DNA of 49,493 bases from Octopus bimaculoides. Lineage: Eukaryota. Below, piece by piece: positions 5,106-6,622 of this stretch. The stretch lies in assembly GCF_001194135.2 (NCBI RefSeq), contig NC_068989.1:33948990-33998482 (forward strand), read 5' to 3'. The stretch's first letter is position 1; every line of letters starts with the position of its first letter. The notes beneath the pieces were generated by a model. The model was given only the letters and a program-made list of their open reading frames with translations. It had not been told where the DNA came from and searched no databases. Made by a program: the position numbers and the translations under genes.

Positions 5106-6622
5106 AAGCAACCATTACAGCTTGAATTCTACAAGGTATCGACTCGTACAAAGTTTTAATTGTTTCCAAATGAATTTTTGTCCATTCTTCAATTAAAACT
5201 GTCTTCAGTTCTTGTAGTGATGATGGTGGAGGATATTGACTCCTTACTTGTTTTTCTACAATGCACCATAAACATTCAATAACATTGAGATCTGGGGACC
5301 GTGGTGGCCAGATAAGATGTTCAACTTCACTAGAATGTTCCTCATACCATTCAGTAATAACTTTAGCTGTGTGAATTGGTGCATTATCATCCTGAAAGAT
5401 TGTGCTTCCCTCCGGGAACAGTTCCGCAAGCATAGTATAAATTTGATCAGATAAAATGCTTAAATAGTCTTGACTATTAATTCTGCCATGAAGAGACACC
5501 ATTGGGCCAGCGGATTTCCAAGATATAGCCCCCCAGATCATCACAGACCCTCCTCCATGTTTAACAGTTGGAAGAAGGCAGTCTGGGTCAAATGCTTCTT
5601 TTGGCTGTCTCCACTTGTATACTCAGCTGGTGGTTGGAAGTAAGGTAAAGGATGACTCTTCTGAGAAAATAACATTCTTCCACTGCTCTAGGGACCAATT
5701 CTGTCGGTTTTTTCTCCACTCTAAATGCTTTGCAATGTTTGTTTTTGAAAGTAGTGCTTTTCTGATTGTTGCCCTCCCATGAAACCTGACTTTGTGCAGC
5801 TCAAAACGAACAGTTTTTGTGGAAACTGGGTTCTTGATGTGGTCATTAAGCTCTGCAATAATTTTAGGAGTTGTACTTTTGTGATCCTTTCTAACAATTT
5901 GCATAAGAGTCCGACAGTCCCTATCTGAAAGTTTTGGTTTTCTTCTAGAGTTTTGTTACAATGAGGAGGTTTATTTCGATATCTGTGGTAAATCATTCTC
6001 TGTAAAGAGTACCTTAACTAAACACAAACGCATTCATACAGGAGAAAAACCATATCACTGTGATATTTGTGGTAAATCATTCTCAGAGAAAGGTCCTTTA
6101 ACTCAGCACAAATGTACTCATACAGGAGTGAAGCCATATCATTGTAATATCTGTGGTAAATCATTCTCTCAGAGCAATAGCTTAACTAAACACAAAGACC
6201 TTCATACAGGGGAGAAGCCCTGTCAGTGTGATATCTGTGGTAAATCATTCTTTCTCAAAGGCTGTTATTACTTTTGAGACAGTACTTCTTGATACACCAA
6301 ACATTTCGGCTGTTTACGTCAGGCTAGTGCCTGCCATATGNNNNNNNNNNTGATACACCAAACATTTCGGCTGTTTACGTCAGGCTAGTGCCTGCCATAT
6401 GAACACCAACAATTTGACCTCTTTGAAAGTCTGATAGATCTGGCATTTTAGTAAATTTTAATTACCTTTTAACTGGTGATATCTGAAAAGAAACAGCAAA
6501 ACATATTAAGCAACACTAAGAATAAATAAAAAAAAACATGCAAATAAACAAGCTTATGACGGTTTTTATAGATATTTCAAAATTATGATGCTAGGTGTTT
6601 CCATTATTTTGTCCAACCCCTG
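5106..6622 (-). mobile_element. Tc1-type DNA transposon, pseudogenised, with DD36E spacing and the 3' TIR lost
   Basis: TA-CAGGGGTTGGACAAAATAATGGAAACACC TIR at 6594-6622. Transposase ATG at 6446 (MPDLSDFQRGQIVG...), then HTH region [19 protein letters not shown] and FQDDNAPIH...SPDLNVIE. In-frame stops are present. Confidence 0.92.
5978..6251 (+). pseudogene. 274-bp C2H2 gene fragment (three finger units) inserted in the Tc1 transposase
   Basis: 267/274 identical by manual alignment to 7810-8083 of ZNF gene 1. Transposase codons resume on both sides. Confidence 0.92.

Follow-up and report, generated by a model that had tools for sequence, protein, structure and literature searches.

A zinc-finger gene fragment inside a decayed Tc1-like transposon of Octopus bimaculoides, probably copied in cis from the neighbouring gene

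On chromosome CM046609.1 of Octopus bimaculoides the transposase gene of a Tc1-like element is interrupted by sequence which, read on the opposite strand, encodes C2H2 zinc fingers. An intact C2H2 gene, here named ZNF gene 1, lies close by. The locus raises the question of how the finger-coding sequence came to reside within the transposon, and whether the transposon may have carried it any further. A preliminary description of the locus proposed a capture from the neighbouring gene and considered a mobile, Pack-type Tc1 as its possible outcome. The present analysis covers a stretch of 49,493 nucleotides, referred to as the window, position 1 of which is position 33,948,990 of chromosome CM046609.1 in the assembly GCA_001194135.2; the fetched locus was identical base for base. 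The features that bear on the question are the following (positions are those of the window).

4940-5108, plus strand: unrelated repeat fragment replacing the 3' end of the Tc1-like element, coding for ...GRGRPRKTWDEVVKHDLRMLGL and terminating in ...GCAAAAA; another partial copy lies at 15831-15911.
5109-5977, minus strand: downstream (3') transposase part of the Tc1-like element, from K*TSSL... to ...RIQAVMVA, identified by translation, by alignment to 343-aa relatives and to the DNA of three related copies (L002, L003 and L004), and by the Pfam domains DDE_3 and HTH_Tnp_Tc3_2.
5978-6251, plus strand: inserted copy of ZNF gene 1 sequence, matching 7810-8083 at 267/274 positions, with zf-C2H2 and zf-H2C2_2 Pfam matches; absent from the related Tc1 copies.
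6252-6340, minus strand: part of the Tc1-like element directly upstream of the insert and on the same contig as the insert (translation; alignment to related copies).
6341-6401, no strand: assembly artefact consisting of 10 N (6341-6350) and a second exact copy of 51 bp (6290-6340 = 6351-6401).
6402-6622, minus strand: 5' end of the Tc1-like element with the transposase start (ATG at 6446-6444), the 5' UTR and the 5' TIR, which ends CAGGGGTTGGACAAAATAATGGAAAC at 6622.
7534-9309, plus strand: ZNF gene 1, a called gene on CM046609.1; its single, intact ORF encodes a C2H2 protein of 591 aa containing about 20 fingers.
7810-8083, plus strand: donor segment in the region of fingers 3-5 of ZNF gene 1 (267/274), with the ancestral state at all four non-synonymous differences.

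The two minus-strand flanks, which had been read as transposase sequence (...VITAFEK(E)) in the preliminary description, do belong to one continuous Tc1-like transposase, and the removal of exactly 274 nt restores its reading frame. The reconstructed ORF was recognised by the Pfam models DDE_3 (51.1 bits, cutoff 28.6) and HTH_Tnp_Tc3_2 (38.5 bits, cutoff 31.5), and over its full length its product shares 72% identity with intact proteins of 343 aa from the protein collection. Based on these matches the host is a member, although a truncated one, of the Tc1/mariner elements (Tc1-like, DD34E-type). A TA target dinucleotide (6623-6624) was found beside the end of the 5' TIR at 6622. At the opposite end the Tc1 homology breaks off near position 5109, roughly 85 bp before the 3' end of the element, and neither a 3' TIR nor any other second TIR was detected anywhere in the window. 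Furthermore, the host transposase contains four in-frame stops, and the SDES motif of its relatives, the aspartate of which we take from general knowledge of Tc1/mariner elements to be the first catalytic D of the triad, reads SEES in the host copy. With these four stops and a glutamate in place of the first catalytic aspartate the host copy is dead.

Several observations concern the surroundings and the relatives of the element. The repeat at 4940-5108 (plus strand) and 15831-15911 (minus strand) encodes ...GRGRPRKTWD(E/G)VVKHDL..., and the copy at 4940-5108, with its terminal GCAAAAA, resembles a 3' tail from a LINE or a LINE-derived SINE; the second copy adjoins a long TG/CA-rich low-complexity tract (15846-16648). 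The 5' TIR of the Tc1-like element adjoins a (TA)n(TG)n microsatellite (6623-6660) and (TA)n also borders the related copy L004, which may indicate a preference of this Tc1 family for TA-repeat targets. The related copies are deposited in ENA (L004, ERZ8879894 NODE_4445; L002, ERZ27287446; L003, ERZ21867824 ctg82722l). L004 still codes for a 318-aa product with an intact C-terminus, and in a related host the lineage of this Tc1 may be younger or may be active. Elsewhere in the window an ORF on the plus strand (32000-32578), which is broken by a 124-N gap and ends ...SDEQGERFHQDIASMEQRYQGFGNAGMLADYCWMLYRN, may have been left by another mobile element; the 122 aa at its C-terminus had no Pfam match at E<=0.001.

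The match between the insert and the donor that had been described previously (5978-6251 versus 7810-8083) was reproduced as an ungapped alignment with 267 of 274 positions identical, the mismatches being located at 6004, 6082, 6095, 6113, 6172, 6177 and 6222. Since no other register of 274 nt in the two ZNF genes of the window exceeds 81.4% identity to the insert, the match is specific and far above generic finger similarity. The neighbouring gene, already proposed as the donor, is also the closest one available, every other ZNF register of the window lying at or below 81.4%. It is located in cis and in the same orientation, at a distance of 1,832 bp from start to start and of 1,558 bp from the end of the insert to the start of the donor, or 1,497 bp after subtraction of the 61-bp artefact. 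A protein search with the 91-aa insert peptide returned only short proteins of at most 74% identity with generic C2H2 character; ZNF gene 1 itself was not returned, so that this search is silent on closer paralogs. The search with full-length ZNF gene 1 returned mostly vertebrate KRAB-ZNFs and again not ZNF gene 1 itself, so that it is silent on orthologs and paralogs, and in a cluster look-up the exact sequences of both ZNF proteins of the window were absent from the protein collection. The second of these, an intact C2H2 gene of 637 aa, is encoded in the same orientation 33 kb downstream (42626-44539, plus strand) and contains a paralogous three-finger region (43109-43397), which is 80% identical to the insert and has one linker with a 5-residue insertion.

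The insert measures 274 nt, or 3 x 84 + 22 nt as stated in the preliminary description, and its first and last 22 nt are identical (GATATCTGTGGTAAATCATTCT); the donor interval likewise starts and finishes with identical 22-mers. The 84-bp register and the finger boundaries do not coincide. While the length formula held, the three finger units formerly assigned to the insert turned out to be two complete and two truncated fingers: the first finger lacks its first Cys, and the last unit consists of the first 10 residues of a fourth finger, cut after CGKSF. Pfam zf-C2H2 matches three stretches of the insert, and the complete CX2CX12HX3H units number two. The stop-free frame with the HKDLH finger is present as described (...HKRIH / ...HKCTH / ...HKDLH). 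It was rejected as a sign of selection, since an open frame is expected at 2.6% divergence from an ORF and all four non-synonymous changes are on the insert side. Likewise, an exonisation via the ATG at 5961 was discarded, this ATG being out of frame and followed by a stop after 14 codons.

The seven differences between insert and donor comprise four non-synonymous substitutions (A to P at 6095, R to C at 6113, S to N at 6177 and, in a linker, Y to C at 6222) and three synonymous ones. According to the comparison with other finger units all four non-synonymous differences are derived in the insert, where they strike the linker Tyr (Y to C) and the helix (A to P, R to C). This seven-site pattern is the one expected from two separately evolving loci, presumably a neutral pseudo-fragment and its constrained parent gene.

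The direction of the event follows from the related Tc1 copies, which originate from other assemblies and share 90% (L004), 82% (L002) and 77% (L003) DNA identity with the copy in the window. All three lack the insert and are unbroken over the site (GCC TTT GAG AAA GAA GGA AAA ACC TCC TCA, translated as AFEKEGKTSS), and the intact related proteins also read AFEKEGKTSS at this position. Because the three copies are continuous without the fragment, the ZNF fragment was inserted into the Tc1-like element and not the reverse, which upholds the direction of capture assumed previously. An insertion of Tc1 into a ZNF pseudogene was rejected, since it predicts the order ZNF-Tc1-ZNF and the order seen is Tc1-ZNF-Tc1 with contiguous Tc1 coordinates.

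The minus strand of the window reads GCCTTTGAGAA(AGAA)[insert]GAAATAAACCTCCTCA, and the exact breakpoints are ambiguous by 1-4 nt. The unambiguous insert spans 5978-6247 (270 nt), the TTCT at 6248-6251 being assignable either to the insert or to Tc1. Depending on the assignment of these four bases and of two nearby private differences, the element lost 0 nt (270-nt insert with a TTCT overlap) or 3 nt (274-nt insert). The earlier statement that almost no transposase sequence was lost is thus borne out, the loss amounting to at most 3-4 nt of the approximately 1.2-kb Tc1. At the left junction there is no overlap with the donor flank (0 nt, blunt), and at the right junction the 4-nt TTCT microhomology was found as described. 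In 200,000 random placements of the break and the donor fragment an overlap of at least 4 nt at either junction occurred by chance in 3.9%; the TTCT overlap is weakly significant and suggestive only. The insertion site is located inside a 16-nt polypurine run of the family consensus (GAGAAAGAAGGAAAAACC), about 370 nt from the 5' end of the element.

In agreement with the preliminary description there is no poly(A), neither end of the insert bearing an A-run. Neither a target site duplication of at least 5 nt was detected at the insert, where at most a 3-nt TTC repeat is present, nor a TTTT/A site at the insertion point. Poly(A), a target site duplication of at least 5 bp and insertion at TTTT/A are the characters by which LINE-mediated retrocopies, or class 1 templated sequence insertions (TSIPs), are recognised (PMC5110952). 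Such an origin was rejected on account of the missing terminal A-run, the TTC repeat of at most 3 nt and the position of the fragment internal to an exon.

The relative age of the capture was considered from the divergence of the two partners. At sites where L002, L003 and L004 agree, the Tc1 copy of the window shows 6.6% private divergence, part of which may be subfamily divergence, versus 2.6% (95% CI 1.0-5.2%) between insert and donor. Taking into account this difference and the four stops in Tc1, the element would already have been old at the time of capture. The Tc1-like element thus seems to be older than the capture, the comparison being supportive rather than decisive.

Any mechanism has to accommodate an insertion whose direction, junction structure, cis donor and dead, truncated host are established at the level of the sequence. 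We consider it probable that the fragment arose as a cis templated insertion from the neighbouring ZNF gene during the repair of a double-strand break, as an old germline event. Break repair copying a nearby gene had also been proposed in the preliminary description, and it fits the lack of poly(A) and of a long target site duplication, the donor about 1.5 kb away in cis and in the same orientation, and the 4-nt overlap. Since the donor is intact, the fragment was copied and not cut out. The break, the priming end, the polymerase and end-joining steps and their polarity are what we infer in the following scenario. An internal double-strand break would have occurred in the polypurine stretch (family consensus GAGAAAGAAGGAAAAACC) of a resident Tc1-like element on CM046609.1. 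The resected minus-strand 3' end, ...GAGAAAGAA-3', could then have annealed via AGAA to the TTCT at 8080-8083 of the ZNF gene, and its extension leftwards would have copied about 270 nt, from 8079 back to 7810. The new strand would have been released and joined bluntly to the other end of the break, which would result in the Tc1-ZNF-Tc1 chimera with the loss of at most 3-4 nt of Tc1. Subsequently the inserted fragment would have decayed neutrally, the donor gene remaining under constraint. A copy of 270 nt is longer than the typical fillers of polymerase theta.

Alternatively, the break in Tc1 may have been patched by NHEJ or alternative end joining with a pre-existing ZNF-derived fragment, a course of events that we regard as unlikely. 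The fragment might have been a cDNA of the ZNF mRNA (a class 2 templated sequence insertion), a by-product of repair or replication, or a linearised or rolling-circle-copied circle of three units (252 bp). One blunt junction, a short overlap at the other and the lack of both target site duplication and poly(A) are NHEJ-type features of class 2 TSIPs, and since the donor is an exon, the presence or loss of introns does not speak against an RNA origin. The length of 3 x 84 + 22 nt with identical terminal 22-mers is compatible with just over one turn of a 252-bp circle; however, the terminal 22-mers are identical in the linear donor too, so that circle-derived and linear copies look alike. Cis template switching predicts an insert close to its own gene and in the same orientation, as is seen here at about 1.5 kb, whereas a free cDNA or DNA fragment could have landed anywhere in the octopus genome of about 2.7 Gb. 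Direct template switching is favoured for this reason.

It also had to be considered whether the chimera was created by the assembly, either by a short-read assembler that wrongly placed ZNF reads into a Tc1 contig, by gap closing or by chimeric library molecules. The chromosomes of GCA_001194135.2 represent the earlier published shotgun assembly combined with Hi-C (PMC9068888). Due to this origin from the 2015 shotgun assembly with Hi-C scaffolding the contig-level sequence is short-read sequence, and both partners of the chimera are repeats. The window contains eight N runs, one of which, the 10-N gap at 6341-6350, marks a contig end 89 bp from the insert, in line with the distance of about 90 bp given in the preliminary description, and is accompanied by the unmerged 51-bp overlap. 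The ORF of ZNF gene 1 (591 aa) is recorded on one contig only (CM046609.1, GCA_001194135.2). Moreover, the ORFs specific to the copy in the window are recorded in no independent assembly: exact-product look-ups of the ORFs 5721-5996 (minus strand, left junction), 6128-6277 (plus strand, right junction), 5623-5904 (minus strand) and 4786-5544 (minus strand) found none on record.

An assembly error nevertheless appears very improbable. Beyond the insert the sequence resumes within 0-4 nt of the point at which it had left Tc1, which a chimeric join would not do, and a graph or gap-closing walk would have had no bridge, since the left junction offers no shared k-mer and the right one only 4 nt. 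Both junctions together with 89 bp of Tc1 beyond them belong to one contig, and the overlap of this contig with its neighbour is perfect over 51 bp. Furthermore, the seven differences between insert and donor are pseudogene-like in their derived pattern and would not be shown by misplaced donor reads. Taken together, the common return point, the missing bridging k-mer, the single contig and the seven differences render a misassembly unlikely.

The join itself adds 61 spurious bases (6341-6401). A second 10-N gap (24994-25003) is flanked by an exact 47-bp duplicate, gap and duplicate together occupying 24994-25050. Both 10-N joins are unmerged contig overlaps in which no sequence is missing. 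Such overlaps add false sequence and shift reading frames across the joins, and they are likely to be systematic in GCA_001194135.2.

That an active or non-autonomous Tc1 took up the fingers and then transposed, perhaps by the local hopping for which Tc1/mariner elements are known, so that a multicopy chimeric family spreads finger cassettes, is extremely unlikely given the single TIR and the replacement of the 3' end by another repeat, the transposase with its four in-frame stops and a glutamate for the first catalytic aspartate, the lack of the insert in all of the closest relatives retrieved (L002, L003 and L004), the donor next door as predicted by a capture in situ, and insert boundaries that cut through fingers. 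Multicopy Pack-TIRs do exist in animals (PMC8277862). The 26- and 27-mers spanning the junctions had 0 matches in JGI metagenome contigs and GTDB genomes, collections without octopus DNA in which 0 matches were expected and which are uninformative in this respect. The Pack-type Tc1 and the route for finger shuffling envisaged in the preliminary description are therefore not supported by a host that is dead, has a single TIR and is immobile as it stands, and by retrieved relatives without the insert. We assign the same very slight chance to the wider claim that the chimera, or an ancestor preceding the 3' truncation, is or was one of several copies and that octopus Tc1-family elements moved C2H2 blocks to new sites and thereby aided the shuffling of fingers during the cephalopod C2H2 expansion. 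The mechanism of this expansion is still unresolved in the literature, and capture by transposons is not among the topics of a recent survey of it (PMC12513265). The chimera described here shows no transposon-borne route of finger shuffling and has no bearing on the cause of the expansion.

According to its sequence the Tc1-ZNF chimera has no evident function and, as it stands, is unable to transpose. What the templated insertion from the neighbouring gene would imply is that break repair in the octopus germline is able to insert copied stretches of a tandem-repeat gene, a few hundred bp in length, into the DNA close by, and such repair would be one minor way of scattering finger-coding fragments. 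A practical value lies in the caveat for annotation, as neither the stray ZNF ORF nor the duplicated 61-bp join is a gene.

Among the known systems in which foreign sequence is found within DNA transposons, the abortive gap repair after excision, as in Ds and in P-element internal deletions with filler DNA, replaces a large internal part of the element. It shares with the octopus chimera the filler DNA from an ectopic template inside a DNA transposon. In the octopus Tc1, however, at most 4 nt of about 1.2 kb are missing, which argues for a simple internal double-strand break and not for an excision gap. The Pack-MULE and Pack-CACTA elements of plants likewise carry a fragment of a host gene between the ends of a DNA transposon, but they possess two TIRs, are multicopy and transpose, whereas the octopus copy has one TIR and is a decayed autonomous element, with no second chimeric copy among the sequences retrieved.

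The octopus event would seem to correspond to the templated insertions of cancer and human genetics. Class 2 TSIPs, as described by Onozawa and Aplan, have NHEJ-type junctions and distant donors and are likely to be RNA-derived (PMC5110952). These and the templated insertions at structural variants have in common with the octopus chimera a patch of a few hundred bp, an intact donor, a small deletion or microhomology, and neither target site duplication nor poly(A). In contrast to class 2 TSIPs, the octopus insert has its donor in cis at a distance of about 1.5 kb, and this proximity favours template switching directly on DNA.

A close counterpart is provided by the Pack-TIRs of animals. In 100 animal genomes Tan et al. 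2021 (Nat Commun 12:4280, PMC8277862) detected 370 Pack-TIRs, 115 of them in TcMariner elements, and ascribed the single-copy ones to transposition-independent gap filling. The signature of the latter includes a bias towards duplication in cis, microhomology (median 2 bp) at one breakpoint or more in 68% of cases, gaps in which the TE loses a median of only 4.6% of its sequence, breakpoints inside the element, and outgroups whose orthologous TE lacks the captured sequence (PMC8277862). The octopus chimera contains non-TE sequence between two parts of one TIR element and has an identifiable parental copy, as in the definition of a Pack-TIR, and it displays a cis donor at 1.5 kb, the TTCT overlap (P ~0.04), a loss of at most 4 nt and an internal breakpoint, as in gap filling. 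Thus, both share genic sequence in a TcMariner element, a close parent on the same chromosome, microhomology at one breakpoint and a tiny loss of TE sequence, and in both the capture apparently took place after the TE had become resident. They differ in that the octopus host is now without one TIR and in that the host is a cephalopod, no mollusc being named in the main text of that paper. On every criterion examined in the window and in the related copies, the octopus chimera would appear to correspond to a single-copy Pack-TIR resulting from transposition-independent gap filling. The novelty implied in the preliminary description is not supported, since hundreds of single-copy captures are already known in animal TIR elements, with 115 in TcMariner (PMC8277862). 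What the locus adds to them is a clean cephalopod case of a probable cis templated insertion, in which the two junctions can be interpreted together with the donor and with the empty site as seen in related elements.
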